Virus record (IMG/VR): IMGVR_UViG_3300029258_002750
Span: 124,001-188,000 of that record
Reading direction: 5' to 3' (one strand)
Length of the DNA: 64,000 bases
Shown: positions 7-61,126 of the stretch, piece by piece
How the letters are laid out: every line of letters starts with the position of its first letter
Position numbering within the stretch: position 1 is the first letter of the stretch
Notes under the pieces: model-generated
Database searches by the model: none
What the model saw: only the letters and a program-made list of their open reading frames with translations
What the model was told of the DNA's origin: nothing
Made by a program: the position numbers and the translations under genes

Positions 7-402
7 TCAGAAGGGGAACTCACTCGGATCGATCCCTGGTTCAATGTCGTTCGCGACCTCGGCCAGTCCGACGACGGCGCCCTTGTGGTCGAGGATCTGC
101 TCCCGCATCTTGTCTCGGTAGACCTCTCCCGCGTACGCGCGAGCAGTGTTGTCGAGGCTCTCCCACGTGCTCCTGTGCTGGATCGAGCAGAAGATGAGCA
201 CGCGCTTCTTCGGTCCCTTTCGGAACATGCCGCCCATCTCCAGCACCGTCGAGACGTGGGAGGCGTTGTGTGCTACCCAGCCGGGCGGCAGGTCGCCCCG
301 GAAGTAGTCCTTGGCGTCCCGCGCCTGCTTGTGGATCGCAGCCTCGGCCTTCATCTTCGTTCCGCACAGTTCGCACGTGAAGGTGACATCGATGCCGCTC
401 AC
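7..402 (-). CDS. hypothetical protein, Cys/His metal-binding (CELC...CSIQH)
   Basis: GTG start re-called at 402, GTGA overlap with upstream stop. Confidence 0.75.
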   Translation of the reverse strand: MSGIDVTFTCELCGTKMKAEAAIHKQARDAKDYFRGDLPPGWVAHNASHVSTVLEMGGMFRKGPKKRVLIFCSIQHRSTWESLDNTARAYAGEVYRDKMREQILDHKGAVVGLAEVANDIEPGIDPSEFPF

Positions 403-680
403 GTGCTCTCTCCGACACTCGCCAGCCGATCGATCGCCGAGCACGAGTCGAGCGGGGCCTCGGCCCACTCGTACTGGCAGGTCCGACAGGAGCGGTGCAT
501 GTGCTCCTCGGCGGAGAGCCTGCCTTCCATCAGGCGATTGCCGATCGTCGCCGGTACTGACAGCCCGCTCTTCAGCCTCTTCTTCAAGAACGGCTGTGCC
601 TTGACCCACACCACGTGGATGTCGCGCTGGCCGCACTTGGGGCAGGAGCGATCGTGTCGGTAAGGCTTCAGCTCGCTCAC
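399..680 (-). CDS. Zn-ribbon protein with C-tag
   Basis: CPKC...CRTC; ends SAIDRLASV; GTGA-coupled start. Confidence 0.8.
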   Translation of the reverse strand: MSELKPYRHDRSCPKCGQRDIHVVWVKAQPFLKKRLKSGLSVPATIGNRLMEGRLSAEEHMHRSCRTCQYEWAEAPLDSCSAIDRLASVGEST

Positions 681-865
681 GCGTTCGCCTTGTAGTGCAG
701 GTCGCCGATCCACATCCCGCAGACACAGCAGCAGCCGACGTCACCGGCCCAGTGATCGGTGCGTAGGACGGTGGTGAGTTCCCCCTCCACCTCAGCCTGC
801 TTCGGCTCGTGGTCCTTGCACCAGACCGTGCTCTTCTCATCGAACCAGGCGATAACCTCGTCCAT
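677..865 (-). CDS. small Cys-rich hypothetical protein
   Basis: coupled ORF; WCKDH, CCCVC. Confidence 0.7.
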   Translation of the reverse strand: MDEVIAWFDEKSTVWCKDHEPKQAEVEGELTTVLRTDHWAGDVGCCCVCGMWIGDLHYKANA

Positions 866-1149
866 CAGTCCATCCCACTTGGAGCGGTCGATCTCTTCGC
901 CTGCTCCTCGGCGTAGATCCGATTCGCGTAGTCCGCGTAGGCGGAGAAGATCTCCCTGTCATCTCCCCAACTGGCGATCTCCTTTCGGCCCCTCTCGGTG
1001 CAGTGACCGGCCGAGATGAGACCGAGACGCGACAGGGAGATGACCAGCTCGCGGCCCTCTTGGGTATCGGTCACGCCGACGCTGAACCAGTGGTAGTAGT
1101 AGCGCAGGAGCATCAGCTTTTGCTCTTGCGTCAGGTCCGAACCGGCCAC
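865..1149 (-). CDS. hypothetical protein
   Basis: coupled ORF (TGATG overlap). Confidence 0.7.
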   Translation of the reverse strand: MAGSDLTQEQKLMLLRYYYHWFSVGVTDTQEGRELVISLSRLGLISAGHCTERGRKEIASWGDDREIFSAYADYANRIYAEEQAKRSTAPSGMD

Positions 1150-1152
1150 TTC

Positions 1153-1347
1153 TTACTCCTCTGGGATCGGTCCCAGTCGCAGCTTCTTGGAAACGGATAC
1201 CATTCGCTCGTGGGTGACCGATCCCGCGCACGTCTTGCAGAGAGGGCTACAGCTGTTACCCCACCAGTAGCAGGTGTGCTTGCCGCAGATCACGCAGACC
1301 TCGACGACTTCGTCGCACGGCTGTTCTCTGGTCACTGGTACGGGCAT
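1153..1347 (-). CDS. small Zn-finger protein
   Basis: CVIC...CKTC; ATG at 1347 overlaps upstream stop. Confidence 0.7.
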   Translation of the reverse strand: MPVPVTREQPCDEVVEVCVICGKHTCYWWGNSCSPLCKTCAGSVTHERMVSVSKKLRLGPIPEE

Positions 1348-1559
1348 CAGTCCAGCCACTTCTCGCACCCGCGTTTCATGTTCTCCAGCGCCTCGTACTG
1401 GGCTTCGGTCACGTGCCGCCGGTCCTCGATCCAGGCGCGGATGTCCCGCACTTTCTCCTCGACCGACCCGGCGAACTCCTCGGCCTTCTCGGGCAGCTCG
1501 TTGTCGATCATGTCGAGGATCTCATCGGCGATCTCGAGCGCGCTCTCCCAGTCAGCCAT
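1347..1559 (-). CDS. acidic helical hypothetical protein
   Basis: ATG at 1559 with GGAG upstream. Confidence 0.7.
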   Translation of the reverse strand: MADWESALEIADEILDMIDNELPEKAEEFAGSVEEKVRDIRAWIEDRRHVTEAQYEALENMKRGCEKWLD

Positions 1560-2208
1560 CTCGTCTCCCGCAGCAGCGCTTCCACTTCTTCCCGGAGCCA
1601 CAACCGCACGGTGCGTTGCGGCCTGTCTTCTTCCTCGGTCGGCGGTAGGTTCCGGCGTGCTTGAAGTAGCGGTGCAGGTGGCCATCGGACGTCATGGCCT
1701 CCTTGATGCCCAAGCCGGTGGTGAGCAGCCGCTCCAGCCAGTTGTCCGCGAACCACGACCACACGCCCCCGGGCAGCGGCGAGAACCGATCGTTGAGCAG
1801 CTCGGTCAGGTCGGTCAGGCCCTCGGGGGTCTCCTCCGACTCTTCGTTCACGTCCATCTGGTAGACCGCCCAGACGGCGATCTCGATGAGCGTGAGCACC
1901 TCGGTGACGCTGGCGTTGATGACCGATCCCTCGATGTGATCGGCCGCGCCGAACACGCGCAGGAGCAGCTTGGCGATGTCCTCGTCGTCCGGGTGGACGC
2001 CGTTCCGCTTCCGGGAGAGCCGGATACCCTCCTCGACGGCCTCGGGACACGTGGAGATGAGCCACTTGAAGATCAGGCCCGCGCCCTTCGGGGTCTCGAT
2101 CTCCCACGACGATCCCAGGCACGGGAATCCTTTACGGGCCGCGTGCTTGGTGGCGCGCGCCACGTCGGCCTGGATCTCGGCGATCATCTCGGGCGCGGGC
2201 TTCTCCAT
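1552..2208 (-). CDS. SEC-C motif protein
   Basis: C-terminal GRNAPCGCGSGKKWKRCCG; GGGTAGAAC-N6-ATG. Confidence 0.85.
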   Translation of the reverse strand: MEKPAPEMIAEIQADVARATKHAARKGFPCLGSSWEIETPKGAGLIFKWLISTCPEAVEEGIRLSRKRNGVHPDDEDIAKLLLRVFGAADHIEGSVINASVTEVLTLIEIAVWAVYQMDVNEESEETPEGLTDLTELLNDRFSPLPGGVWSWFADNWLERLLTTGLGIKEAMTSDGHLHRYFKHAGTYRRPRKKTGRNAPCGCGSGKKWKRCCGRRDG

Positions 2209-2214
2209 ACCGAT

Positions 2215-2223
2215 GTTCTACCC
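2215..2223 (-). promoter_or_regulatory. GGGTAGAAC putative promoter, leaderless
   Basis: 6 nt before ATG 2208; its TAG is the upstream stop. Confidence 0.75.
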
Positions 2224-2493
2224 GGGACTGGCGCCCATCCAGCCGAGTTGTGTCACAGCATCAGGGATCTTGCAGCGGTCGCGCCGGACCGAGATGACTA
2301 GGCCGCTTGGCAGCTTCACCAGGTAGCAGTCCGGCGGCGCAATCATGTAGACCTTGGTGTGCCAGACGCCCTGGTCCCGCTGGTGTTGGGTGTGGATTCC
2401 CAAGTTCAGGTCTACGACCGTCCCCCACGTGTATCGGCAGCGTGGGAACGGTGGCGAGAAGATCACCCGGGAGCCGACCGTGAGGAAGTTCAC
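2218..2493 (-). CDS. SH3/KOW-like protein with C-tag
   Basis: LTVGSRVIF; ends DAVTQLGWM. Confidence 0.75.
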   Translation of the reverse strand: MNFLTVGSRVIFSPPFPRCRYTWGTVVDLNLGIHTQHQRDQGVWHTKVYMIAPPDCYLVKLPSGLVISVRRDRCKIPDAVTQLGWMGASPG

Positions 2494-3071
2494 CGGACGA
2501 CGGCGGCCAGCTGATCGATCGCGCTCAGGGGTCCCAACTCGTCCAGCTCCACGTGCAGGGAGGCGATCTTGATTCCTTTGGCCTCGAAAACGACCAGGAG
2601 CACGTAGTCCTGGTCTCGGCTCGGCTCGGTGGCGCACTTCCAGTCCTTCGCGCGCCTGCGCCATCGCCGGTAACCCGCGCCGTCGCGCATCCCCTCGGGC
2701 GGGTCGGTGTTGTCCCAGTACGGGTAGTCCTCGACGTAGTCCGGCATTACCAGGTTGCCGCGCAGCTCGTGCTCGCCCCAGGGGGAAGCGAAGGTGAAGC
2801 GACCCTTCTCGGGGATCCAGATCTTCCAGCCGCACTCCAGGTCGAACCACGGTCGCCGGAACGACTCCTTGGCGATCTCGCGGAACATATCCATCGTCGC
2901 CATCACGCGGTGGCTCCAGGTATCGACCTCGACCCTCTCGGCCTTGAGCTGAGATGCGATCAGGCGCGCCCGGTCCCGGATGATCTGCCACTGAGCGTGA
3001 CGGACGTCTCGAATGAACGCCGCCAACTTGGCCTTCGGAAAGCGCTTGCCTTCGTAGATCTTGGTGCTCAC
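2490..3071 (-). CDS. hypothetical protein with C-tag
   Basis: GTG 3071; ends SAIDQLAAV. Confidence 0.8.
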   Translation of the reverse strand: MSTKIYEGKRFPKAKLAAFIRDVRHAQWQIIRDRARLIASQLKAERVEVDTWSHRVMATMDMFREIAKESFRRPWFDLECGWKIWIPEKGRFTFASPWGEHELRGNLVMPDYVEDYPYWDNTDPPEGMRDGAGYRRWRRRAKDWKCATEPSRDQDYVLLVVFEAKGIKIASLHVELDELGPLSAIDQLAAVVR

Positions 3072-3325
3072 TCGCCTTTGCCCTCCTCGCGCAGCAGCCG
3101 ATCGCCCAGGACGGATAGACGGGTGATCGCGTTGTCGGTGTAGGGCTCCCAGTCGTCGTATTCGTCCGCTCGCGACATCTGCATCCACTCATAGGCCACG
3201 TCGCAGACGTAGATGTCTTCCTCGAAGCCGGTCATTCTTTCGGCGTACGCTGGCTCGTTGTTGATCGCGGCCGGTCGCTTCGCCAGGCCGCTCTCGCTCA
3301 TCTCGATCGCGCGGCGGACCTTCAC
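3068..3325 (-). CDS. DUF2829-like-outline protein with C-tag
   Basis: RRAIEMSESGLAKR...DDWEP; NAITRLSVL. Confidence 0.7.
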   Translation of the reverse strand: MKVRRAIEMSESGLAKRPAAINNEPAYAERMTGFEEDIYVCDVAYEWMQMSRADEYDDWEPYTDNAITRLSVLGDRLLREEGKGE

Positions 3326-3573
3326 GTCAGCGCCGCCAGCCGCGAGATGGCGTCGGCCTGGATCAGCTCGTGAGTCCAGCGGTGGTAGGTGGCCCTCGAG
3401 TTGCCGAATCGCGGGCCGAGTTGGAAATCGACGACCCACAAGAGGCACTCGCCGATCCCATCAGGATCGTGACCCTCGGGGCACTCGCCGTGGATGCTGT
3501 CGCACACCCACTTGACGACCTCGCCCTCCCAGCCGTGGTCGCGATCGATCACTCGTAGCCCGGGGCGGATCAT
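3322..3573 (-). CDS. SH3/KOW-like protein with C-tag
   Basis: IRPGLRVID..WEGEVV; ends DAISRLAAL. Confidence 0.8.
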   Translation of the reverse strand: MIRPGLRVIDRDHGWEGEVVKWVCDSIHGECPEGHDPDGIGECLLWVVDFQLGPRFGNSRATYHRWTHELIQADAISRLAALT

Positions 3574-3579
3574 GGTGAC

Positions 3580-3588
3580 GTTCTACCC
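3580..3588 (-). promoter_or_regulatory. GGGTAGAAC putative promoter, leaderless
   Basis: 6 nt before ATG 3573. Confidence 0.75.
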
Positions 3589-3618
3589 CGGGTCAGCGCT
3601 CTACCCCGGGTCAGCGCT
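3583..3618. repeat. 18-bp tandem duplication CTACCCCGGGTCAGCGCT x2
   Basis: read directly; overlaps promoter and a GTCAGCGCTGAC palindrome. Confidence 0.9.
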
Positions 3619-3625
3619 GACTCGG

Positions 3626-4003
3626 CTATGGACTGACGGTAATGGCCGTCACGTGACCGGCCGTCGAGCTTCCATCTGCCGAGCGGACCTCGAACTGGAC
3701 TCGGAAGTTGCCCGCCAGTGTCGGTGTTCCGCTCACCACGCCGTCCGGTGATGTCGCCAGGCCGGTGGCCGAAAGCCCTCCGTCGTCCGAGAACGTGTAC
3801 GGCTGAACGCCGTACTGCGCAGTCAGGCGGTAGCTGTAAGCCTGACCGACCGTCCCATCTGGCGGGGAGATCGTCGCGAACTCGACGGCTCGAGTAGGCG
3901 TGGAGCTGGTTGTTGTCGTCTTGTCTCCATCGGAATCGCTACATCCGGCAGCGAACAAGCCGACGCACAGAACGAACGCGGCGGAGGAGATCAGGGCTCT
4001 CAT
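3626..4003 (-). CDS. lipoprotein with putative Ig (He_PIG-like) domain
   Basis: signal + lipobox FAAG-C; GTVGQAYSYRLTA...G.VSGTPT.AG.F pattern. Confidence 0.8.
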   Translation of the reverse strand: MRALISSAAFVLCVGLFAAGCSDSDGDKTTTTSSTPTRAVEFATISPPDGTVGQAYSYRLTAQYGVQPYTFSDDGGLSATGLATSPDGVVSGTPTLAGNFRVQFEVRSADGSSTAGHVTAITVSP

Positions 4004-4016
4004 CCCTCATGGCTCT

Positions 4017-4316
4017 CTACCACCTTCCCCGAACCACACCCTGTCTTGGTTCCGTGCGGATGTCCAGCTGATCGGCAATGTTCGCCAGGCGATCGACCAC
4101 ATCGAGCGGCCGGAGGAACATCTGCCACGTGTCGGCGGTGGTGTCCGGCTCGGGGCCATCGAGCACCGTGAACTCGTACATCGGGTCGCCGAACTCCTGG
4201 TCTATGAACTGCCGGGTGATGCGCACGCGCCAGGCGGGTGTGATAGTGTCTCCGCGCCACCAGACGACCTCGCCGATCTTGAACAGGAACGGGTAGATGG
4301 GCTCGGTGAATCTCAC
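4017..4316 (-). CDS. SH3/KOW-like protein with C-tag
   Basis: FKIGEVVWW; DVVDRLANI. Confidence 0.75.
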   Translation of the reverse strand: MRFTEPIYPFLFKIGEVVWWRGDTITPAWRVRITRQFIDQEFGDPMYEFTVLDGPEPDTTADTWQMFLRPLDVVDRLANIADQLDIRTEPRQGVVRGRW

Positions 4317-4495
4317 CCGCAGACCGGGCACTTGGCGAGCAGCCGCCGCGCGCCTGCGCCGCTCGCGACCTTCCATCCCTTCGGCAGCTCGAATGGACCG
4401 CCCTTCGCCTTCTTGTGGCAGCCGGGCTTCGCCGTGCCGCGCACGTGCGCCATGCAGGTCCAGTGGGTCTTCTTCGGTTTCTTCGGTCGGCTCAC
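4313..4495 (-). CDS. small basic Zn-binding protein
   Basis: Lys-rich; CPVCG terminus. Confidence 0.65.
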   Translation of the reverse strand: MSRPKKPKKTHWTCMAHVRGTAKPGCHKKAKGGPFELPKGWKVASGAGARRLLAKCPVCG

Positions 4496-4496
4496 G

Positions 4497-4817
4497 CTAG
4501 TATCCGTCGTCCATTTCGCCCGTGTAGTCGATGAACTTGGTACCGGGGGTCTTGGTCGGGTCGTGGCTCAGGTGGTTCGGGTCCACGATCTTGAAGTTCT
4601 CCAGGGGATCGCGCGGAGTGTTGCGCGGAACGTCGAACGACAGCGACACGATGTCGACGCCCTCGGAGTCGCCCGGCTCGATGTCGGCCGTGACGTTCTT
4701 GAGGATGAACTCCTTACCGTCGAGCGCCAGTCGGATCTCGGGTACGGGTTTCTGCTCCAGCACGCGGTTCAGCCACGCTTGGAAGTCGGTGATCACGCCG
4801 AACTCGGGATCGATCAT
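4497..4817 (-). CDS. hypothetical protein
   Basis: ATG 4817 overlaps upstream stop. Confidence 0.7.
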   Translation of the reverse strand: MIDPEFGVITDFQAWLNRVLEQKPVPEIRLALDGKEFILKNVTADIEPGDSEGVDIVSLSFDVPRNTPRDPLENFKIVDPNHLSHDPTKTPGTKFIDYTGEMDDGY

Positions 4818-5065
4818 GATGCGCGCTCGATTCGTGCGTCTGGTTGGAACAGCCCATCGCGGAGCCTCTCGGCCCACACCTTCTCGAAGTGTCTAGCTCG
4901 TCTCCGGTCGGGCGTGTAACGAGTCTCCTGCATTCCGCGTTCGATGCAGATCCGATCGATCCACATCTGCGAGATGCCATCGCCGTACGTGCAGGAGACG
5001 ATGTAGCCCTCGCCCGGCGCGGGGTGCGGGCTACCGATGATGTCAGCGAACTCGTTGTTGTTCAC
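4814..5065 (-). CDS. hypothetical protein
   Basis: coupled ORF. Confidence 0.7.
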   Translation of the reverse strand: MNNNEFADIIGSPHPAPGEGYIVSCTYGDGISQMWIDRICIERGMQETRYTPDRRRARHFEKVWAERLRDGLFQPDARIERAS

Positions 5066-5343
5066 AGGCCCAATACCTCCAGCACGGACGCGGTTTCGTT
5101 ACGCTCGATCTTCTCGCTTCGCACGAGGTGGGAGACGAACGCGACCAGCTCCGACTTCGGGAGCACGAACTTGGCTTCCGCCGACCAGGTGACGGTCTTG
5201 AGACCGTTGCGGTCCTCGGGCTCGCCTTGCATCAGCTGGACGATCTCAACCTCGCCGCCCTCGATGCCGGAATCGCAGCTGAACACGTACTTGGTCTTCG
5301 CCAGGCCGTCATGCTCCACCTCAGTTCGGAACGTGTGGCTCAC
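5062..5343 (-). CDS. hypothetical protein
   Basis: GTG 5343 coupled. Confidence 0.7.
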   Translation of the reverse strand: MSHTFRTEVEHDGLAKTKYVFSCDSGIEGGEVEIVQLMQGEPEDRNGLKTVTWSAEAKFVLPKSELVAFVSHLVRSEKIERNETASVLEVLGL

Positions 5344-5975
5344 GGCTCTCCCTCGGTCTCCCGAATGCGGACAACCTCGTACCAGTCGACCTCGCACCGA
5401 GTGTGAGTCCACGCGGCGTCCTCGTCGACCTCCGGGTTGTCGTCCTCCAGCACGAAGACGACGAACTTGTGACGCTCCTGCTTCGGCGGTACCAGGACGC
5501 GGGCCTTCGCCCACCGCACGCGTTTTCTCCATGCGGCGAGCGATTGATCTGCCGCCTCGCGTGGCGTGATCGGCTCGCTGAGTCGCTGCGTGAGCTGGAA
5601 GCAGCGGTCCACGCCTTCTACGAAGCCCTCGTCGGCGATACGGACGATCTCGCCTGCCTGGATCCACTCGTTCTCGCGGTCGCGCGCCTGTCTGAACGCT
5701 TCGGCCTCGGCCCGCAGGTCTGCGATGGTCTGCTTCCAGCCGATCCAGGCGAGGTGATCCACGACCTCCAGCCGGGCGGTTTCCTCGGGTGCAAACGGGA
5801 ACCGGGCACCACAGGCCGACTCGAGGATCAGCGTGTCGTTCTCGACCTCCGTCGTCGTCTGCTCGACCACCTTGGCCAGGACCCCGGCCCACGCATCGGG
5901 AACGTCCGAGCTGGCAGACACGCGCAGGACATCGCCCGGCTTGATCTCGTTCTTCGCGACCATGTGAGTCAGCAC
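5340..5975 (-). CDS. SH3-like N-terminus plus coiled region
   Basis: IKPGDVLRV; internal tag-like EVVDHLAWI. Confidence 0.7.
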   Translation of the reverse strand: MLTHMVAKNEIKPGDVLRVSASSDVPDAWAGVLAKVVEQTTTEVENDTLILESACGARFPFAPEETARLEVVDHLAWIGWKQTIADLRAEAEAFRQARDRENEWIQAGEIVRIADEGFVEGVDRCFQLTQRLSEPITPREAADQSLAAWRKRVRWAKARVLVPPKQERHKFVVFVLEDDNPEVDEDAAWTHTRCEVDWYEVVRIRETEGEP

Positions 5976-6014
5976 GATGGCCTCACTCGTTGGCGGCCCC
6001 CAGCTCTCGGTGGG

Positions 6015-6551
6015 TCACGACCACTCCTCCAGTCCGGTGATGAGCGCGCCGATCTCCGCCAGCTTGGTCTCGGCGACCGCAACCACGGCGCGGATCGCTT
6101 CTTCGGGCGTGTCTCCGTGCTCGGCCCATCTGCCGCCAGACGAGTCCGGGCTTCCCAGGAACGCGGTGTAGTGATCGGGCAGGATCGCGGCCAGCTGATC
6201 GATCGCCGATCCCTTCAGCGTGGTTTCGCCGGTCCGACAGTTGTACGTGCCGTGTCGCCAGTGCTCCTTGAGCTTGATCCTGCGGCACGGCGACCAGACC
6301 GTGTAGTGCCAGCCCATGTTCTCGTGCACCTCGGCGGTCCAGCCCTTGCCCATGTGCTTGGCCAGTGCGTGCGCACGGCGCCTCGCCACCTGGTAAGCCT
6401 TCCAGGTGCACTTCGTACCGCACCACGGCGCGCAGTAGAGGTCGCCTTTACGAACGGCGCGCTTCGAGTAGAGATCCTCGATCTCTTTCTCTCGCTCGGC
6501 GGCCGTCTTGATCTTCTTCCGCTTCCGCTTCCTCCTCGATCGCGTTGTCAT
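6015..6551 (-). CDS. hypothetical protein with internal C-tag
   Basis: internal SAIDQLAAI; leaderless start. Confidence 0.8.
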   Translation of the reverse strand: MTTRSRRKRKRKKIKTAAEREKEIEDLYSKRAVRKGDLYCAPWCGTKCTWKAYQVARRRAHALAKHMGKGWTAEVHENMGWHYTVWSPCRRIKLKEHWRHGTYNCRTGETTLKGSAIDQLAAILPDHYTAFLGSPDSSGGRWAEHGDTPEEAIRAVVAVAETKLAEIGALITGLEEWS

Positions 6552-6832
6552 GGTGTCGTTCTACCCAGCTCGGCGAGACGCTCGATCGCGCCGCCAGGTC
6601 GTAGCTCGTGCTCCATGAACCACTGACCATCCTCCGGTTGGTGGTTCTCCAAGAAGATGCGGTAGACCGGCGGGTGTAGCTTGGTGCCTCGATCGACGGC
6701 GACCACACGCCCGCGCCGCAGATCGAGCGAGACGACCTCCACCAACTCGCCCTTCTCGAAGCCGATCTTGGGCATGACGAGCGGCTCGACGGTGATCTCT
6801 TCCGATCGCGCGGTCAGGAAGTACTTGGGCAC
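6548..6832 (-). CDS. SH3/KOW-like protein with C-tag
   Basis: FEKGELVEV...WFMEHELRP; GAIERLAEL. Confidence 0.8.
   Translation of the reverse strand: MPKYFLTARSEEITVEPLVMPKIGFEKGELVEVVSLDLRRGRVVAVDRGTKLHPPVYRIFLENHQPEDGQWFMEHELRPGGAIERLAELGRTTP
6558..6566 (-). promoter_or_regulatory. GGGTAGAAC putative promoter, leaderless
   Basis: 6 nt before ATG 6551. Confidence 0.75.
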
Positions 6833-7026
6833 TCGTCCTCCTCGGCCAGCTGAAGCACGAAGAACGACAGCTCGCAGGCCGGACTGTTCTTGCTCTCGGC
6901 CTCGTCGAGCACACGTCGCGCGCACGCGAACATCCGCTCGCACTTGCCGCCGGTCACCGCGTCGATTGCTCGTCGTGCCTGAGCCCGCTTGCGCGCCTGC
7001 CTGTTGTCTGGCGCGCCGTACCTCAC
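6814..7026 (-). CDS. hypothetical protein
   Basis: coupled ORF. Confidence 0.6.
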   Translation of the reverse strand: MRYGAPDNRQARKRAQARRAIDAVTGGKCERMFACARRVLDEAESKNSPACELSFFVLQLAEEDECPSTS

Positions 7027-7361
7027 AGATCCTCGATGCTCCGTAGGCCCAGCCGGACCTCTTCCAGAGCCTTCTTCCTGGCGGTGAGCCGATCGGCTTC
7101 GGCGAGCATGGCGGCAGCCTGGTCTCTAGTGTGCCGGTCGTACTCTCCGTCGGTGTCCCCGGCCACATGCTCTAGTCCTCGGACGGTTGCGGCGAACATC
7201 GCGTTGAGCCTGCGGTCGAATCTCTCCCGGCGACGCCAGTATGCCCAGCTGTGAATGAGCCGATACCACCAGGAGCCGTGGGCGAGCCGGTCGCTCTCGG
7301 CCCTCAGCTTTTCCAGCTCGCGCCGCATCGATTCGTGGAGCTGCATCTCCTCGGGGGTCAT
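7023..7361 (-). CDS. helical hypothetical protein
   Basis: ATG 7361 coupled. Confidence 0.7.
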
Positions 7362-7966
7362 GCGATTCTCCGGCCGCAGCACCGCTTGTACTTCTTCCCG
7401 CTCCGGCATGGGCACGGATCGTTGCGCCTGAGCTTCTCCCCGGGTCGGCGGTAGGTGGACGCGGCCCGCGTGATCCGGCTGTGGTGCTCCCTGGAGGCGC
7501 TGGCTTCCATTGCGGCTCCTGCTGACATGGTGACTCGGTTCCAGAACATCGACCAGGAACCAAACGCCAGGCGATCTCCATCGGCCAGGCACTCGAACCA
7601 CTCGATGAGCCCGTCGCCGGTCTTTCTGTCAACACCGTGCTCCTCGGCCGCGCTCGACAGCGTACCGGCGAGGAGGATCAGCCCTCCCGATCCAGTAAGG
7701 AACCGGACGCCGTAGCCCTCGGGCGTGCCCCGGAGCGCCTCGGTGATGGAGAGCATCTCCTCCTTGTCTCGATCAACCCACGGCTGCGACAGCATGTAGC
7801 GCTGGGCAACGTCCCAGGCCGGGTCGTTGACGACCTTCAGCAGGATCGGGATCGCGGCCCAGTCGACCTCGACGTACCAGCCTTCGTCGACCCACAGGAA
7901 CGTGTCGCGCACGTGTACTACGCCGTCCGCCATGTGGACCTGCATTCCGGGGAACAACTCGCTCAT
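7358..7966 (-). CDS. SEC-C motif protein
   Basis: C-terminal [18 protein letters not shown]; leaderless start. Confidence 0.85.
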
Positions 7967-7972
7967 GCTGAC

Positions 7973-7981
7973 GTTCTACCC
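7973..7981 (-). promoter_or_regulatory. GGGTAGAAC putative promoter, leaderless
   Basis: 6 nt before ATG 7966; TAG is upstream stop. Confidence 0.75.
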
Positions 7982-8206
7982 AGGATCCAACTGAGCTAGC
8001 CGGTCGATCGCCGACGCTGGCCGCAGCTCGCTCTCGGCCATCAGGTAGGGCTTCGAGCGGTTCCCCAGCGCGAGCAGGTAGATCGAGCAGAAGCGATGGC
8101 CCTGTTCGTTGACGATGGAGCCCGCGATCTCAGCCAGGTGACCGTTGAGCACCGAGTTGAAGCCGGTGCTCGCGATGATCACGACGTCGCCCTCGTGGTA
8201 CCTCAC
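7976..8206 (-). CDS. SH3/KOW-like protein with C-tag
   Basis: YHEGDVVII...ESELRP; SAIDRLAQL. Confidence 0.8.
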   Translation of the reverse strand: MRYHEGDVVIIASTGFNSVLNGHLAEIAGSIVNEQGHRFCSIYLLALGNRSKPYLMAESELRPASAIDRLAQLDPG

Positions 8207-8679: not shown

Positions 8680-8683
8680 CAGC

Positions 8684-9372: not shown

Positions 9373-9374
9373 GA

Positions 9375-51789: not shown

Positions 51790-51850
51790 GTCGTTTAGAA
51801 CTCACCAACCGCGTCGAGATGCTCGACGTGGCTCGGGTGTCTGGCGAGCT

Positions 51851-51859
51851 GGGTAGAAC
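51851..51859 (+). promoter_or_regulatory. GGGTAGAAC putative promoter, leaderless
   Basis: 6 nt before GTG 51866. Confidence 0.75.
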
Positions 51860-51865
51860 CTCGGT

Positions 51866-52330: not shown

Positions 52331-52332
52331 GT

Positions 52333-53075: not shown

Positions 53076-53099
53076 GCGAGCGTCAGATCAGGAGGTCCG

Positions 53100-53768
53100 A
53101 TGTCTGGGGGCGAGATGCGTACCTGTGCGAGCGAGGGATGCGAGGAGCCGACGAAGGATGAGCGGTGTCCTCTGTGCCAAGCGGAGGACGAGGTCTTCTC
53201 CGAGGAGAAGCTCTCGCCGCGCGAGCTGCTGAAGGCTAGCCTCGCCCGACTACGACAAGTCGAGGAGGAGCACCGTGCGCTCTGCGAGAGGCTGGCGGAC
53301 AGCGAGGGCCTCGACGGCATGGCCGAGGATCTGATCGAGATCGGCCGTCTGCCGCCGTCCAAGCTCAAGTACCCGATCGAGATCACCGACGTCCGTGGAT
53401 CGGGCCTGCTCGAGTGGCTCGAAGAGAACAGGCTCAACTGGCGCAAGCCGGGCACGTTCGTCAGCGTCCGGCCATGCGGCGACGAGTACGAGGGCAAGAC
53501 CTACTTCGGCATCCTCATCGGCGATCTGCCGATCAGCGTCGGCATCAGCTATGACGACGAGACGGGTCAGCTTCACGTGTGCGCTGGGCACGGCAACCCG
53601 GCGATCTTCGTGCCCGCTCTCGGCAAGCTCATCTTCGGCTGCGGCTCGTTCTGGGGGCCGATCAAGGACCCGGAGCAGGTCCGAAAGATCACCGACGACG
53701 AGATCCAGAATCTCTGGTACATGAAGGCGATCAAGGCCCAGCTGGCTGGGCTGGAAGGCGACGCGTGA
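53100..53768 (+). CDS. hypothetical protein with N-terminal Zn finger
   Basis: CASEGC...CPLC; GGAGG RBS. Confidence 0.8.
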   Translation: MSGGEMRTCASEGCEEPTKDERCPLCQAEDEVFSEEKLSPRELLKASLARLRQVEEEHRALCERLADSEGLDGMAEDLIEIGRLPPSKLKYPIEITDVRGSGLLEWLEENRLNWRKPGTFVSVRPCGDEYEGKTYFGILIGDLPISVGISYDDETGQLHVCAGHGNPAIFVPALGKLIFGCGSFWGPIKDPEQVRKITDDEIQNLWYMKAIKAQLAGLEGDA

Positions 53769-54217
53769 CCGCCGAGGCTGTCACGATCGGGCTACCGCTG
53801 ATCACCTGGGAGAGGCTGCTGCTCGTCTTCCAAAACGCATATCAGCTTGATGCCGAGCCGCCGATGGGATGGAGCGAGGAGGAGCGCAAGCGGGAGAAGC
53901 GCGCCATGTTCTCCGCGATGGCGGCTGTAGGTCGGCAGCAGGAGGAAGCGAGGGAGCTGCCGCCTGGCGACTGGATGGTTGTCTGGGACGAGGTCGATCG
54001 TCTAACCAGGTGGAAGAACCTCAGCCAGGGAGATCGAGCGGCCATCCGCGAATTCCGGTCAGCCGTTGAGCGAGCGCCTGCGCTGCGCCCCACCTTCCGC
54101 ATCCTCGGGCTCGTGAAGCGGGCGCAGGGGTCGGTCCTCGCGGCGCAGCAGCAGGTCAGCGCTGCCCAGGAAGACGTGGGCAAGGCCCTGAAGGCGATCT
54201 TCCTTGATGGCTCGTAG
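53765..54217 (+). CDS. helical hypothetical protein
   Basis: GTG 53765 coupled. Confidence 0.7.
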   Translation: MTAEAVTIGLPLITWERLLLVFQNAYQLDAEPPMGWSEEERKREKRAMFSAMAAVGRQQEEARELPPGDWMVVWDEVDRLTRWKNLSQGDRAAIREFRSAVERAPALRPTFRILGLVKRAQGSVLAAQQQVSAAQEDVGKALKAIFLDGS

Positions 54218-54560
54218 GAAGAAGGCGAAGCGCAGGCACCTAGTTCCGACGCGACCGGAGCCAAGGCTAAAGCCGAAGTCGTTCTCGCCGAGCGCCACCA
54301 TCCGCGAGCTGGTGCGAATGCTGTTCGGTTCGGAGGTCAAGCCGGAGGGCGAGGTCTACTTGCAGTGCGGATCGGCTGACGAGCGGAGTGGCGAGATCTA
54401 CCTCCAGATTGGCCTCACCATCATCCCGGACCCCGATGCGAGCGTCGTGGATCGTCTTGGCGATCTCCTCAGGCGCGAGGAGCGAGAGGCGCTCACGCGC
54501 GGAAGCGACGGGTTCGTCGGCACACGCTTCGGCGAGGTCGGGATCGACCCCCTGGGATGA
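54207..54560 (+). CDS. hypothetical protein with C-tag
   Basis: SVVDRLGDL. Confidence 0.75.
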   Translation: MARRKKAKRRHLVPTRPEPRLKPKSFSPSATIRELVRMLFGSEVKPEGEVYLQCGSADERSGEIYLQIGLTIIPDPDASVVDRLGDLLRREEREALTRGSDGFVGTRFGEVGIDPLG

Positions 54561-54901
54561 CAGATCGGGAGAAGGAACTCATCGCGCGGCGGGCCTACGG
54601 CGAGTACGCCGTCAACGAGCAGTGCACGCGCATCTGGGAGAAGTACAGGAAGAAGCGGCGGGGGTCGATCTACATCGAGTTCTTACGCGTGATCCACCAG
54701 AGAAGCTACACGTGGGAGGAGTACGAGGCCGCAGCTCGGCCAATCCACAAGGAGCATCCCAGGGAGCCGTCTCCAGCCTTCGGGCCGGAACCCGGGCCGG
54801 AGCCGGAGCACGAGGGTCTCCTGGCTGACCGGGATTCGATCCTCGAAGCGCTCCGGCGACCGTGGCCGCGTCGTGGATTATCTGACGAGGAGAAGTCGTA
54901 A
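54557..54901 (+). CDS. hypothetical protein
   Basis: coupled ORF. Confidence 0.7.
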   Translation: MTDREKELIARRAYGEYAVNEQCTRIWEKYRKKRRGSIYIEFLRVIHQRSYTWEEYEAAARPIHKEHPREPSPAFGPEPGPEPEHEGLLADRDSILEALRRPWPRRGLSDEEKS

Positions 54902-54979
54902 GCTCCCATTGTAGCCCAACTTGCGATCGTGCGACGAGCGTACTAGATGTCGGACGTCTAGGGTAGGAACAGGAGAGCC

Positions 54980-55189
54980 ATGCTGCCGGACTACCTGATC
55001 GCCCTGACGGACCTTCACGAGAAGACGCCCCAGTTCTTCCGGGACGAGGTCTTCGCTCACGGGGATGCCAAGACCAGGATCGTCGCGCTCAGGATCCTAC
55101 GCGATGGCCTGGACCCCGTGCGGCGCTCCTCGCCTGTTCTCCGGGCGATGATGCAGATCGAGTCCAAGGAGCACGGAAACGCTGGGTAG
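54980..55189 (+). CDS. hypothetical protein
   Basis: AGGAG RBS. Confidence 0.7.
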   Translation: MLPDYLIALTDLHEKTPQFFRDEVFAHGDAKTRIVALRILRDGLDPVRRSSPVLRAMMQIESKEHGNAG

Positions 55190-55192
55190 AAC
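55184..55192 (+). promoter_or_regulatory. GGGTAGAAC putative promoter
   Basis: TAG is upstream stop; followed by AGGAGG. Confidence 0.7.
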
Positions 55193-55213
55193 CACATCAG
55201 GAGGTGGTTACCC

Positions 55214-55735
55214 ATGCCTTTCGTGAGGCTCGACGCAGACGAGATGGAGTTGATCCTGCTCCACCTGCCGGACGACACCGTGTGCCACGATCTCCGCTTG
55301 CGCCTTGGCACGATCCTGCCGATGGTCCCCCATCTACCTGAGAACTTCGTGGTTGCTGGGTCGGACGAGCACCACGTGGCGAGCAGCGAGGGCGTACCCG
55401 AGGAGCCCAAGGCCGAGGAGACCTGTTCGCCTCCCACTCAGGCCCACGCCGAGAAGCCCTGGCCCGAGGGCGTCGTGCCCTTCGGAACCCTGCCCTTCGG
55501 TTGGCGTCGACACGGCGAGCGCGTCGTGCGCGCCAAGGAGGAGCAGGACGTCATGAAGTGGATCCTGAAGGGGAAGAAGAAGGGGTGGACTCACGCCCAG
55601 ATCGCTGCCGATCTGAACGGCCGTCTCCTTCGCACCCGTCGTGGCTCCAAGTGGGAAGGGAGCGGCGTGGGACGTCTGCTGAAGACGTCAATCGAGCACG
55701 AGATGAACAAGCACCTCAAGAAGCGCTGGGGCTAG
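55214..55735 (+). CDS. serine-recombinase DNA-binding (Recombinase) domain protein lacking catalytic domain
   Basis: PFGW...EQDVMKWI...G.T.AQIAADLN.....TRRGSKW....V.RLL. Confidence 0.7.
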   Translation: MPFVRLDADEMELILLHLPDDTVCHDLRLRLGTILPMVPHLPENFVVAGSDEHHVASSEGVPEEPKAEETCSPPTQAHAEKPWPEGVVPFGTLPFGWRRHGERVVRAKEEQDVMKWILKGKKKGWTHAQIAADLNGRLLRTRRGSKWEGSGVGRLLKTSIEHEMNKHLKKRWG

Positions 55736-55775
55736 ACGATCGCACGCGCGCCCGCTGATCGTTAGAATCGCGGTC

Positions 55776-57239
55776 ATGACCACGCTGACCGCACTGCTGC
55801 TCGAGGCCCGTCGAGGCAGGATGGGCCGCTCCGGCCGCCGCCGTCCGCTCAAGACGGCTCCGCGTCACAAGACATCGGCCAGGCGCGAGAAGAAGTCCGC
55901 CAAGCCCATCAAGATCACCAAGGAGATGCTCAAGAAGGGCGTCAAGCCCGAGGGCGTCACCTGGAAGGACTGGATGCAGGCAGGCGGCAAGTTCGGTGGC
56001 GGTACAGGCAAGCCCAGGCCGAAGAAGCTCCGCGTCCCGAGCCATGTGGAGGTTGAGATCGGCCGCTGGGCGCTCGATCGGGTCTACATCAGCGACTCGA
56101 ATCTCGAGCACCACCTCCAGCGATCTGGCCGCAAGGGAGATCTCCCGCACACGGCCGCATGGGTCGGTACGGACAAGGAGCGGATGAAGCTCCTGCTCAA
56201 GTTAGGCGTTCGTCACTACCGCAAGAAGGGCCGGAAGTCGAAGGAGAAGGAGAAGGCGAAGTCGGTCTCGAAGTCGATGGGGAAGGCGCTCTCGGCCGAC
56301 CCGTTCGCGGGAGCCAGCTGGGGAGACGAGGACAAACTCCAGCAGACCGGCTGGTGGGGCGTGGGCGGCGGCAAGAAGGCATCGAAGCGGCTCCCGAAGC
56401 CGAAGCCGAAGCTCACGCCCGAGCAGCAGAAGCTCCGAGATCTGGTGAGCGGCTTCAAGAAGAAGATGTCGCACATCCCGCGTACGGCGGCCGGTGGCAT
56501 CGTCTTCAAGACGTTCGAGGGTCCCGATCTCTGGGATCTGCCGGTGCTGGCCTGCCAGGTCGCGCCCAAGTACGGCACCTACTGGGTGTTCCCGAAGGGT
56601 GGTCTCGACATTGGCGAGAGCCTGCACAAGGGGGCGGCTCGCGAGGTCAAGGAGGAGAGCGGTGTTCGTGCGAAGGTCGCGAACAACCAGGCGCACGTTA
56701 CCAAGAGCAAGTTCGGTGACCGTGGCAAGTACGACCTTCCGCTCATCCTGAAGCTGATGAAGGAGCAGTACCCCAAGGAGGCCAAGTTCATCGAGTCCCA
56801 GGCTGAGGAGATCAAGGGGATGTTCTTCTCCTGGGAGAATGAGACCCACTACTACGTGATGAAGCACACCGGCGGCTCGCCGGGGTCTGGCACCGATCAC
56901 GAGATGGCCCGCTCCGAGTGGGTATCGCTGCGCGACGCGTTCAAGCGCAGCTATCGGATGGAGGAGGTCGTCACGAAGCTCTTCCCGGTGATCAGGCGGA
57001 TGTGGAAGCCGACCGGCGAGGCGAAGAAGCCGCTGCCGATCTCGGCGCTGCGGACGCCCAAGCCGAAGACGATGCCGGTCGGCAAGCCATCGGGCAAACC
57101 GATCGGCCCGAGCCGGATCGTGATTACACCGGCCACGAAGCAGTCGCAGAAGCACACGCCGCTGAAGCAGTGGCCGCCGCCGAAGAAGCAGACCAGCTAC
57201 AAGAGCTACCCGATCTGGAAGCTCTACGGCGGCAGCTAG
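55776..57239 (+). CDS. Lys-rich protein with Nudix hydrolase domain
   Basis: WVFPKG + Nudix box GGLDIGESLHKGAAREVKEESGV. Confidence 0.9.
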   Translation: MTTLTALLLEARRGRMGRSGRRRPLKTAPRHKTSARREKKSAKPIKITKEMLKKGVKPEGVTWKDWMQAGGKFGGGTGKPRPKKLRVPSHVEVEIGRWALDRVYISDSNLEHHLQRSGRKGDLPHTAAWVGTDKERMKLLLKLGVRHYRKKGRKSKEKEKAKSVSKSMGKALSADPFAGASWGDEDKLQQTGWWGVGGGKKASKRLPKPKPKLTPEQQKLRDLVSGFKKKMSHIPRTAAGGIVFKTFEGPDLWDLPVLACQVAPKYGTYWVFPKGGLDIGESLHKGAAREVKEESGVRAKVANNQAHVTKSKFGDRGKYDLPLILKLMKEQYPKEAKFIESQAEEIKGMFFSWENETHYYVMKHTGGSPGSGTDHEMARSEWVSLRDAFKRSYRMEEVVTKLFPVIRRMWKPTGEAKKPLPISALRTPKPKTMPVGKPSGKPIGPSRIVITPATKQSQKHTPLKQWPPPKKQTSYKSYPIWKLYGGS

Positions 57240-57628
57240 CTCTCGCTCGGATCAGGGTGCGTCGCGGCCAGCACATCGATCGTGCTGGTCGAGTCGCCGA
57301 CGATCGCCTGGATCTCGGCTGCGCTGACGCCCTTCAGGATGAGCGCTCGCATGAGGCGCAGGATCGCCTCGCTCTTGGCGCTCTCCCGCGTGTCCTTCGA
57401 TCGCCAGCCGCAGCTCGGACAGAACGGCTGGGCCAGCTCCCAGGAGGCGGCCACGATCTGCACGCGGGAGGTCTTGATCGAGGACTTCGTGAAGCCGACG
57501 CCCTCCCAGGGGTAGGGCGCCGACATGGTGACGTTGTAGAGCGCGACCAGCTTGCCGTCACAGCCTGGCGCCGGGCAGGGGCACGCCTCGAACTCGTTGG
57601 CCTTGCTCCAGTTCTTGTCCTTCGCCAT
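57236..57628 (-). CDS. Zn-ribbon protein with degenerate C-tag
   Basis: CP.PGC...CPSC; STIDVLAAT. Confidence 0.75.
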   Translation of the reverse strand: MAKDKNWSKANEFEACPCPAPGCDGKLVALYNVTMSAPYPWEGVGFTKSSIKTSRVQIVAASWELAQPFCPSCGWRSKDTRESAKSEAILRLMRALILKGVSAAEIQAIVGDSTSTIDVLAATHPDPSES

Positions 57629-59467: not shown

Positions 59468-60483
59468 TAGTAGCGCGCCCCAGAGATTCCGCTCGCGCTC
59501 ACGTAGTCCGGGTCGCCGGGGATGGCCGAGGCGCCGACCGTCGCGGGCTCCTCGGTGGTCCCGTTTGCGGCCTTCTCCAGCTTGTTGACGAGCTTCTCGA
59601 AGAAGCCGCGCTGCTTGCCGCCCGGCGCGAACGAGCCGAACTTGACGACCTTCGCGGCGATGTCCTTGATCGCGTTGCGCTCGTAGTCGTCGAGCTTGCT
59701 CGCGCCAGCGTCCCACGCCTTCCGGGAGCGGTTGATCAGTTCGGCGTCGTCGGCCGCCAGCTCGGCCAGGTCGTCGTCGGGGACCGGCTGGGTGGGCTCG
59801 CCCATCTTGACCGTCTCGGGCTCCGGCTCGCTGGCCTTCTGGGCGTCCAGCTCGGCCTGCTTGTCGAGCACCGGCTCGAGCCGCTTGATCCACTCCTGCG
59901 CGGTCTTCCGCACGCAGGTGCCGTCGAGCACCTTGTAGGCGTTCTTCGAGAGTGCCTTGCGGTCGTACCAGGAGAGGACCGACCGTGCCTTGTAGCCGGT
60001 CTTGTGGAAGAGCGCGTAGACCGTCTGGCGCGCCGTCTTGTCCTCCTCGACCGAGAGACCGCGCGTCTCCAGCAGCTCCAGGCAGAGGTCTTCGCAGACC
60101 TTCACCTTCATCGCGGCCTTGCACTTGGACATCTCCTTGTCCCAGCGCTTGAGGGCCTCGAGCTTCTCGGCCGACTCCGGCACCGCGTCCAGCCAGTCGG
60201 TGATGCACTTGGACCCGACCGGGGAGAGGGTGACCTCCTCGGTTCGCACGAGGCCGGTCGCGACCTTGCCGAGCGCGGTCGGCGTGTCGGGCGCCTCGAA
60301 GTGGATCGCGAAGAGCCACTTGATGTTCTTGTGCTCGCAGAGGATGCAGTCGTCGCCGTCGTCCTCGTAGCCGATGAACTCGGGGTGTGCGAAGGCGACG
60401 TCGTGGTCGCCGAGGCCGTGCTTCGCGAACACCTCGGCGCGCTTCAGGTTGTGCTTGTTGATCGTCTTCTTGCTGAGTGCCAC
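59467..60483 (-). CDS. hypothetical protein with Zn finger
   Basis: CILCEH...VGSKCI; AAGGAG RBS. Confidence 0.8.
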   Translation of the reverse strand: MALSKKTINKHNLKRAEVFAKHGLGDHDVAFAHPEFIGYEDDGDDCILCEHKNIKWLFAIHFEAPDTPTALGKVATGLVRTEEVTLSPVGSKCITDWLDAVPESAEKLEALKRWDKEMSKCKAAMKVKVCEDLCLELLETRGLSVEEDKTARQTVYALFHKTGYKARSVLSWYDRKALSKNAYKVLDGTCVRKTAQEWIKRLEPVLDKQAELDAQKASEPEPETVKMGEPTQPVPDDDLAELAADDAELINRSRKAWDAGASKLDDYERNAIKDIAAKVVKFGSFAPGGKQRGFFEKLVNKLEKAANGTTEEPATVGASAIPGDPDYVSASGISGARY

Positions 60484-60501
60484 TGTGTGACTCCTTCCAC
60501 C

Positions 60502-60532
60502 CCTCTCAACAACCAGGCGTCTGGTTCTCACA
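60502..60532 (-). promoter_or_regulatory. bipartite motif TGTGAGAAC-N11-TTGTTGAGAGG
   Basis: copy 4. Confidence 0.7.
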
Positions 60533-60545
60533 CCTCTCTTTGAAG

Positions 60546-60554
60546 GTTCTACCC
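60546..60554 (-). promoter_or_regulatory. GGGTAGAAC putative promoter
   Basis: upstream of bipartite motif. Confidence 0.6.
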
Positions 60555-60565
60555 AGCTCGCGCGA

Positions 60566-61126
60566 ATGGACTTGTGCTCGCCAGGAATGCCCTCTAGCCG
60601 TAGGATGTCTGGGTCCTACGAGGCCATGGGGGTTACGACAATGCTGGACTTACGTCTGTCCGACTCACGGCTGTGGCACTATCGGGCGGTGGTCACCCGA
60701 GTGATCGACGGTGACACCGTCGAAGCGCACATCGACTGCGGGTTCGGTAACTACCGGGTCGAGCGGCTCCGGCTCGCGAGGGTGGACGCGCCCGAGATGA
60801 GGCCGCGTCGGGGCACGCCCGAGCAGAAGGAGGCCGAGCGAGCTGTCGCGGCAGAGTCCAAGGACCGTGTGATCGAGTTGGTCCAGGGCCGCGAGTGCAT
60901 GATCCGCACCTACAAGACCGGCAACTTCGGCAGGTGGATCGCCGACGTCCACCTCCCTGACGATGCGGTCTCCGCGCTAGGCCGTGTCGCATCGGACGAG
61001 CCGTTGAAGACCGTCAACGAGGTGCTCATCGAGGAGAAGCTGGCGATCCAGTACGGAGGGAAGAAGCCGGACAACTGGGAGGAGTACCGCAACCAGCCCC
61101 GGCCCGAGGAGGCCGGAGAGGCGTAG
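60566..61126 (+). CDS. thermonuclease (SNase-fold) with inserted C-tag
   Basis: RVIDGDT, RLARVDAPE, NFGRWIADV, VNEVLIEEKLA; start may be later (60605-60641). Confidence 0.85.
   Translation: MDLCSPGMPSSRRMSGSYEAMGVTTMLDLRLSDSRLWHYRAVVTRVIDGDTVEAHIDCGFGNYRVERLRLARVDAPEMRPRRGTPEQKEAERAVAAESKDRVIELVQGRECMIRTYKTGNFGRWIADVHLPDDAVSALGRVASDEPLKTVNEVLIEEKLAIQYGGKKPDNWEEYRNQPRPEEAGEA

Follow-up and report, generated by a model that had tools for sequence, protein, structure and literature searches.

The internal proteins of T-even phages are diverse and share only a capsid targeting sequence (CTS) (PMC3012670). Here we describe a nine-residue peptide, henceforth the tag, that recurs in the small proteins encoded on a 64,000-nucleotide (nt) stretch of phage DNA (the window), namely positions 124001-188000 of the IMG/VR contig IMGVR_UViG_3300029258_002750 (275,101 base pairs; source phage uncultivated, GC content 65%). 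Its consensus, counting the serine as position 0, runs hydrophobic (-4), R/E (-3), P (-2), x, S-A-[VI]-[DE]-[RQ]-L-[AG]-[ED]-L-[AV]-[R], and it is maintained by selection at the amino-acid level, on at least two folds and more than 100 sequence families. The CTS of T4 occupies the N-terminus, has about 10 residues, is cut off at L/I-x-E by the prohead protease and is present on a handful of proteins per genome. Like the CTS, the tag is a short helix-prone peptide that forms the sole common feature of diverse small phage proteins, and a T4-type head gene, encoding a gp20-type portal, is present in the clade of the source phage. Unlike the CTS, it is mostly C-terminal (in 122 of the 168 copies across the clade the protein end is at most 10 residues away), is unrelated in sequence and is found on about 45% of the window genes. 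No conserved L/I-x-E site flanking the tag was found among the copies from both phage lineages that carry it. The residues L+5, A/G+6 and +7 could mimic such a site, yet glutamate occupies +7 in only 26-33% of the copies, with aspartate or alanine nearly as common.

The cargo-loading peptides of encapsulins are likewise C-terminal and about 10 residues long, and dock diverse cargo on the inner face of an HK97-fold shell. They differ from the tag in their G/S-rich consensus of the L-x-I-G-S-L type, in their long flexible linker (2-4 residues in the barrel proteins described here) and in the few cargo proteins per system. LPXTG, PEP-CTERM and the C-terminal domain of the type IX secretion system are also genome-wide C-terminal labels on dozens of unrelated proteins; however, these contain a transmembrane segment or comprise a whole domain and act in export, whereas the tag lacks a hydrophobic span and is neutral or acidic in net charge. 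Thus, the tag may work like the T4 CTS, the encapsulin peptides or the sorting signals, but belongs to none of them, since it fails the defining features of each that were compared here: position and cleavage, consensus and linker, and transmembrane segment, respectively. A search of the published literature found no description of such a motif, in agreement with an earlier note on this stretch, which had known of no system of this kind.

A recurrent peptide under purifying selection

The regular expression [SDN]A[IV][DETS][RQAL]L[GA].[LIV] (the strict motif), applied to the six-frame translation of the window, gave 42 matches, compared with an average of 0.03, and at most 1, in first-order Markov sequences and, equally, in residue shuffles within open reading frames (ORFs). 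A stop codon follows within 10 residues in 32 of the 42, and 41 fall inside the 144 genes that an independent call, based on codon statistics alone, placed on 90% of the window. Sites matching a degenerate DNA version of the tag number 17 in the window, where 0.01 were expected. The motif is thus present far beyond chance and mostly near stops, as the earlier note had claimed. An iterated profile built from the window and related loci recovered 50 copies in 49 of the ~140 window genes, with one further copy in ORF 30508-30840, which is absent from the codon-based gene calls. A scan with a loose pattern added weaker variants near the C-terminus of about 21 more genes, bringing the total, weak variants included, to about 70 of ~140; the earlier estimate of 65-70 genes was therefore a fair one. 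All nine peptides quoted in that note were found, the coordinates attached to them being ORF ends or starts rather than motif positions.

In the profile-selected copies, a selection that makes the figures partly circular, the leucine at +5 is invariant, +1 is only A or V, +2 only V or I and +6 only A or G. Further features of the tag include an N-cap serine or aspartate, a capping-box aspartate or glutamate at +3, an Arg/Gln(+4)-Glu/Asp(+7) pair and the glycine or alanine at +6, with a hydrophobic face formed by +1, +2, +5, +6, +8 and +9. The sequence reads as a self-contained, capped amphipathic helix, and a helix is present at this place in both of the AlphaFold2 models presented below, consistent with the helical character proposed earlier.

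Codon use at the invariant leucine and the near-invariant alanine is that of the genome background (p = 0.54 and p = 0.38, respectively). Serine is encoded by TCN in 88 copies and by AGY in 21, and arginine by both CGN and AGR, such that the tag is a feature of the peptide with synonymous codon variation, as had been proposed. A modest skew was noted at a few positions (Ser TCG, Val GTA, Asp GAT, Arg CGG, Gly GGA/GGG). Across 19 orthologue pairs, amino-acid identity is 80% in the tag versus 48% in the remaining protein, and amino-acid divergence is 2.6-fold lower inside the tag than outside. At identical residues the codon differs in 38% of cases in the tag and in 35% outside it, the opposite of the conservation with fixed third codon positions that would have spoken for a signal in the DNA. 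With synonymous change free and non-synonymous change suppressed, purifying selection acts on the tag peptide.

These comparisons effectively refute a nucleotide-level explanation, in which the tag would be the side effect of a promoter, Shine-Dalgarno sequence, recombination site, RNA structure or similar element. That explanation could draw on the position of the tags just upstream of the next gene, with some tails overlapping the sequence GGTAGAAC, and on the preference of Gly+6 for GGA/GGG. As against this, codon use at the conserved residues is that of the background, with all synonymous families used, synonymous divergence is equal in and outside the tag, and alanine is as common as glycine at +6. 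A Shine-Dalgarno by-product was set aside, the association of the glycine-codon skew with a closely following start codon being only a weak, non-significant trend (p = 0.08), though some tag copies may double as a ribosome-binding site. Membership in a GGTAGAAC promoter was ruled out by the variable spacing, the distance from tag to GGTAGAAC ranging from 0 to at least 13 nt.

The sequence GGTAGAAC, mostly in the form CCGGGTAGAAC, is itself over-represented, with 27 sites in the window against 0.54 expected (examples are 2215-2222 (-), 19837-19844 (+) and 57635-57642 (-)). Three pairs lie back to back at divergent gene starts, as at 10465-10472 (-)/10493-10500 (+), 28300-28307 (-)/28311-28318 (+) and 39184-39191 (-)/39195-39202 (+). 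In 14 of the 27 sites an ATG lies exactly 14 nt past the first G, and no -35 element is evident; judged from the sequence, this geometry is that of a -10-like element driving leaderless mRNAs. The element is conserved in relatives and is absent from an 11-kb replication module of the same phage (locus L017), and for this reason may mark one temporal gene class.

Tagged proteins and their folds

BLASTP sorts the 49 tagged window proteins, their tags masked, into 47 clusters, and once the tag is removed 169 tagged proteins from across the clade form 124 families in iterated jackhmmer searches. Together with the occurrence of at least two folds, this upholds the earlier statement that the carriers are not one domain family. 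Tagged proteins are small, with a median length of 90 amino acids (aa), and exceed 200 aa in only 3 of 169 cases versus 72 of 333 untagged proteins; charge, isoelectric point, cysteine content and hydropathy did not separate tagged from untagged small proteins. Searches of Pfam and PHROGs with 10 tagged proteins returned almost nothing, the exception being the Zn-ribbon protein 399-680, whose match to PHROG_15307 ends where the tag starts. Further tagged proteins have paired CxxC motifs, or are longer without a recognisable barrel or cysteine motif. The untagged proteins of the window include NDK, MazG, HD, Nudix, helicase, HNH, HTH and SEC-C proteins. The proposed absence of the tag from recognisable enzymes thus holds for most of the enzymes identified by Pfam in the window, but not for an SNase-like protein with an internal copy.

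The largest tagged family is a small beta-barrel. The AlphaFold2 model of its member encoded by gene 27838-28062, computed from a 23-sequence alignment (predicted local distance difference test, pLDDT, 91.6), has five strands followed by a helix at residues 57-69, which is the tag. In Foldseek searches its best matches are KOW domains of NusG/Spt5 (E = 3e-4, TM-score 0.66), and the sequence profile of the barrel likewise reaches the Spt5 KOW domain (E = 6e-4). These alignments span about 56 residues and cover the barrel only, to the exclusion of the helix. The modelled protein thus resembles NusG/Spt5 in being a five-stranded KOW-like barrel with one helix added, and an SH3-like barrel with a C-terminal helix is also the architecture of Sso7d-type proteins. 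It differs from NusG/Spt5 in that the helix lies outside the KOW matches, is far more conserved than the barrel and is also found on proteins that are not barrels. Likeness to a five-stranded KOW domain applies to the barrel subset only, 39-51 of the 169 tagged proteins, and the tag consensus is nearly alike on barrel and non-barrel proteins.

The second modelled family, represented by gene 40899-41135, has a mixed alpha/beta fold (pLDDT 89.4) and a short helix at residues 68-73 that is again the tag. It has no match in Pfam (E up to 1) and no fold match in the PDB (best E = 2.2); a profile comparison against the PDB gave only a spurious repeat match, and its own profile search drew in clade members only, all tagged and without Pfam domains. 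The label 'DUF2829-like' that had been given to such proteins (DUF2829, Pfam PF11195, is presumably the Tad2 family) found no backing in Pfam, in PDB sequences or in Foldseek, and is dropped; that these proteins differ in fold from the barrels stands, given the mixed alpha/beta model.

When 1.84 billion representative proteins were searched in full by HMMER, the barrel-plus-tag profile found 1867 matches, many of them generic Tudor/KOW/SH3 repeat proteins. A distinct group among these (P0008, P0015, P0026 and P0035) consists of polyproteins of tandem units, each with a barrel of about 55 residues, a helix of the form S/T-P-L/I-E-E/D-L-A-x-L-G and a basic linker ending in K-K-N-P. Three adjacent polyprotein genes of about 4, 11 and 12 units lie at positions 8859-14997 of contig Ga0393277_0001030 (L280; 16.5 kb, 58% GC), an unrelated contig that is not enriched in GGTAGAAC. 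The polyprotein helix aligns column for column with the tag, and the sequence comparison therefore indicates that in the barrel family the tag is an inherited, ancestral part of a barrel-plus-helix module and not an add-on. The N-P-ending motif recurs in proteins neighbouring the polyproteins; it could be a processing site, by which the polyproteins would be cut into many small helix-ended proteins. A profile of the barrel alone (E up to 0.01) detects a barrel in 39 of 169 tagged versus 8 of 350 untagged proteins, and most of the latter eight carry degenerate tags; about 70% of the tagged proteins have no detectable barrel. The portability claimed for the tag thus stands in so far as it is attached to many sequence-unrelated proteins of at least two folds, and fails for the barrels, about a quarter of the tagged proteins, in which it is an inherited part of the module.

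These findings raise the main alternative, that the tag is a cis-acting structural cap: the last secondary-structure element would pack on its own domain, stabilising it or shielding the C-terminus from tail-specific proteolysis, with no shared partner, and would have spread by descent from a barrel-plus-helix ancestor and by occasional exchange of 3' ends. The membership of the helix in an ancient module found in tandem in polyproteins, its position in the model immediately behind the last strand (pLDDT above 90), the enrichment of barrels among tagged proteins and the textbook capped-helix sequence, in which an R-E salt bridge and Gly/Ala at the C-cap would take part, all speak for such a cap, and for the barrel subset the short linker, the model confidence and the polyproteins favour it. 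However, a cis-packing helix is expected to co-vary with its domain, whereas the same near-invariant face (L in 100%, A/V, V/I, A/G) is found on non-barrel folds, and the helix retains 72-80% identity on bodies that are no longer recognisably alike. A cap also accounts poorly for the copies close to an N-terminus, within a nuclease loop and behind enzyme domains. For the tag as a whole we consider a cap rather unlikely.

The same module also bears on oligomerisation or mutual association, in which helix-helix or helix-to-KOW-like-barrel pairing would give homo-oligomers, a heterogeneous network or a condensate. The modules tolerate a tandem arrangement, the small residues at +1 and +6 permit close packing of helices, and many small phage proteins act as dimers. 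Nevertheless, 9-12 residues are short for a stable coiled coil, and a universal interface would lead to promiscuous hetero-association among at least about 70 proteins, such that we regard this alternative as improbable.

Positions of the tags and their spread in the lineage

The tags of the window are given below, each motif position being the start of a 27-nt motif and the gene calls being codon-based.

399..8932 (-): array of small genes with motifs at 414, 2236, 2499, 3328, 4077, 6183, 6566, 7988 and 8714; the copies score 10-19 bits against the profile and have tails of 1-19 aa, apart from the one at 6183, which is internal, 55 aa before the protein end.
11534..12905 (+): two genes whose tags are not terminal, at 11663 (68 aa before the end, with a recurrent 'DPDxE..RVR' second helix behind it, as in an internal-tag family described below) and 12813 (21 aa before the end).
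15951..20769 (+): the densest array, with 14 consecutive tagged genes and motifs at 16137, 16576, 16824, 17030, 17326, 17741, 17998, 18596, 19245, 19574, 19801, 20067, 20294, 20521 and 20650; Cys-rich proteins at 16342-16859 and 19053-19298, KOW-like barrels at 17558-17785, 19612-19854 and 20114-20344, alpha/beta family members at 17782-18042 and 19851-20117, and a protein of two modules with two tags (20521 and 20650) at 20341-20769 (+).
27204..28062 (-): two tagged genes, 27204-27554 with its motif at 27441 and 27838-28062 (the modelled KOW-like barrel) with its motif at 27871.
29638..32756 (+): tagged genes with motifs at 29845, 30246, 30479, 30799 (in ORF 30508-30840), 31058 and 32724; three adjoining genes have the variant D-A-V-[ST]-R-L-G-R-L in common, and gene 29874-30278 (+) combines Zn ribbon, barrel and tag in one protein.
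34258..37790 (+): tagged genes, their motifs at 34486, 34620 (an internal copy, 45 aa before the protein end), 35964, 36196, 36570 and 37740; the tag of gene 34530-34784 is 9/9 identical in its orthologue.
37751..41135 (-): tagged genes, their motifs at 37835, 38345 and 40911; the alpha/beta protein that was modelled is encoded by gene 40899-41135.
42590..46124 (+): tagged genes with motifs at 42737, 43433, 45157 and 46074; the orthologue of gene 45759-46124 is 29% identical outside the tag and retains 6/9 residues inside it.
51866..54560 (+): tagged genes downstream of the helicase gene, with motifs at 52286, 53031 and, 30 aa before the protein end, 54441; these tags are 9/9 identical in the relative at 78% identity.
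60962..60988 (+): tag-like 11-residue insertion in the SNase-like nuclease gene 60605-61126, matched by the strict motif.
55..57286: the weaker variants, in about 21 genes and at most 40 aa from the C-terminus, with motifs at 55, 3107, 18955, 20790, 27563, 29609, 32098, 33586, 33819, 34205, 37064, 38095, 38857, 41192, 42528, 43825, 44106, 44556, 44906, 46430 and 57260; several have orthologues that score as tagged, but they are individually weak and some may be chance matches.

The C-terminal location put forward in the earlier note is correct for most copies, but 23 of the 168 lie more than 30 residues from the protein end. In gene 27204-27554 (-) the tag is near the N-terminus, at residues 30-38 of 116, and 8 of its 9 residues are kept in the orthologue. 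A recurrent family has an internal tag with another conserved helix behind it. The family A DNA polymerase of the same contig (L017:7847-10639, contig positions 40847-43639) has an N-terminal extension of about 300 aa with two copies, at residues 161-169 and 277-285, which resembles a fusion of two small tagged modules to the enzyme, and the DNA methyltransferase of a relative has one copy after its catalytic domain. In the SNase-like nuclease (60605-61126 (+), identified by its SNase Pfam match) the 11-residue insertion lies in a surface loop; the orthologue in locus L004 lacks it and is otherwise 78% identical, the sole clear gain or loss of a tag that we noticed between orthologues. These exceptions, that is the N-terminal, two-module, fused and loop copies, show that the tag marks the end of a module, tolerates an internal position and can arise in new places.

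They also bear on the possibility that the tag is a degron, read by a host or phage protease or adaptor for the timed clearance of accessory proteins. Its mostly C-terminal position, its frequent endings in relatives (...E-L-A or ...L-V-R) and its restriction to small non-enzymatic proteins would fit such a role. However, classical C-terminal degrons (ssrA/ClpX) need a free and defined C-terminus, and the fact that the tag is not strictly C-terminal argues against a degron of this type: the tails are 1 to more than 30 residues long and unlike in sequence, and the internal and N-terminal copies are conserved. Furthermore, the tag would be a stable capped helix rather than an unstructured tail, and we hold a degron to be very improbable.

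We scanned all IMG/VR contigs with a degenerate DNA pattern encoding S-A-[IV]-[DE]-[RQ]-L-[GA]-[DE]-L and obtained 32 stretches in total. The contigs with multiple matches were all either the source contig or tag-rich, and four of five share proteins with the source; for one tag-rich contig no protein in common with the source was found. A relative at 58% identity gave 13 matches, and unrelated high-GC viral contigs from the same scan had zero C-terminal copies. By the profile, 30-60% of the genes in the fetched loci of relatives are tagged (for example 14/35, 16/26 and 13/24), and in the roughly 83 kb sampled from a 120-kb relative contig at least 77 genes are tagged, which answers the call in the earlier note for a search of related genomes. 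When 185,579 species genomes and JGI metagenomes were searched with the DNA pattern, the matches listed comprised scattered single matches, mostly non-C-terminal, which are chance matches, and six short metagenome contigs, each with 3-6 tags at C-termini; by their sequence these contigs appear to belong to the clade as well. Both phage lineages have nearly the same tag consensus, although these have diverged to 58% identity in a conserved protein.

That comparison uses a 338-aa protein (59467-60483), encoded on other IMG/VR contigs at 78% and 58% identity; a first guess that it was a capsid protein was dropped for lack of support. Four window queries against 50,697 cultured phage records (megablast and tblastn) gave no nucleotide or protein match, and searches with single protein sequences or loci returned the source contig as the sole match. 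A T4 gp20-type portal gene starts at window position 63810 (63810-63998 (+)) and runs past the right edge; its orthologues are as follows.

L003:3279-6521: portal orthologue of 1080 aa.
L005:2577-7289: portal orthologue of 1570 aa.

The 1080-aa orthologue matches T4 gp20 (3JA7, E = 3e-18) and Pfam Portal_T4, and the source is therefore assigned, on this homology, to a jumbo phage lineage with a T4-type portal. Both orthologues are about 2-3 times the length of the matched gp20 chains (455-533 aa). An intein within the portal gene is likely; a match to Intein_splicing was found in 3 of 55 large clade proteins scanned, not tied to a particular protein.

A few other features of the window were noted. 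The 1750-aa ORF at 46537-51789 (+) is a DNA helicase (PHROG_1967, E = 1.5e-79, residues 268-876) with large extra regions besides, an assignment that ruled out a tail tape measure protein. A paralogous pair of about 210 aa, at 1552-2208 (-) and 7358-7966 (-), has a C-terminal SEC-C metal-binding motif (PF02810, best E = 5e-9); both lack the tag and have a GGTAGAAC site upstream. Seven GC-rich hairpins of the form GGTGCCCCC-N4-GGGGGCACC lie in a gene-poor 1.5 kb at 21376-22424, spaced by 45-350 nt, and the last copy abuts a GGTAGAAC site; Rfam gave no match to them, and they could be terminators, a replication origin or small RNAs. Searches of the whole window found no tRNA and no match in Rfam.

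A proposed common docking helix and its alternatives

Several observations point to a common external constraint on the tag, which would most simply be one binding partner. The same face is found on different folds and in both lineages; the tag survives while the bodies that carry it diverge beyond recognition; copies occur at N-terminal, internal and loop positions; and there is a bias to small non-enzymatic proteins. We accordingly favour, with a rough probability of 0.45, the reading that the tag is a common docking helix for addressing or recruitment, binding one shared partner. As we picture it, a short self-capping amphipathic helix would close the folded module of about half of the small proteins. 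It would have originated as the C-terminal helix of a KOW/SH3-like barrel module and would have become a common docking helix in the clade. Its face of small residues and leucine (A+1, V/I+2, L+5, A/G+6, L+8) would fit a groove on the shared partner, such that many unrelated small accessory proteins would be recruited to the same place or machine. In fused modules the tag is internal.

The docking helix is argued from sequence and single-chain models, and several points weigh against it. In the barrel model a mere 2-4 residues separate the helix, predicted at pLDDT 91-95, from the last strand; the helix is ancestral in a module repeated 4-12 times in the polyproteins of an unrelated contig; and nearly every detectable barrel of the clade carries it. 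The short linker, the model confidence and the ancestry of the helix fit a structural role in cis at least as well. Moreover, the tagged families are all clade-specific orphan reading frames, and therefore offer no untagged version of the same domain outside the clade for comparison.

Where the tagged proteins would go is a separate matter. A role in the prohead core or in virion loading is the most concrete candidate destination, only by analogy with the T4 internal proteins, and that analogy fails on position, the T4 sequence being N-terminal and cleaved. A stronger form of the docking reading would be an address code on the scale of the proteome, with at least 100 unrelated small effectors loaded by an uncleaved C-terminal helix onto one structure built by the phage, either the prohead core (to be injected together with the DNA) or a different compartment or hub of the phage; we consider this unlikely. 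Such a code would be a C-terminal counterpart of the T4 CTS at a scale at least 10 times larger and would provide a ready-made portable tag for loading foreign proteins.

Should the helix prove to be a cap in cis, one secondary-structure element would be conserved across more than 100 families with unrecognisably diverged bodies, which would still be unusual, and the link to tandem barrel-plus-helix polyproteins would be of interest in its own right. On the reading that we favour, the sequences suggest a shared address peptide, its addressing role putative, with an unusually large coverage of a phage proteome; if it is a docking tag, we know of no other phage case in which a linear peptide is found on so large a share of the proteome. 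The tag would then also offer a portable handle of 9-12 residues for engineering. About half of the small genes of this lineage without known function, which are the hardest phage genes to annotate, would become one functional class, with a single partner whose identity would reveal the destination of all tagged proteins.

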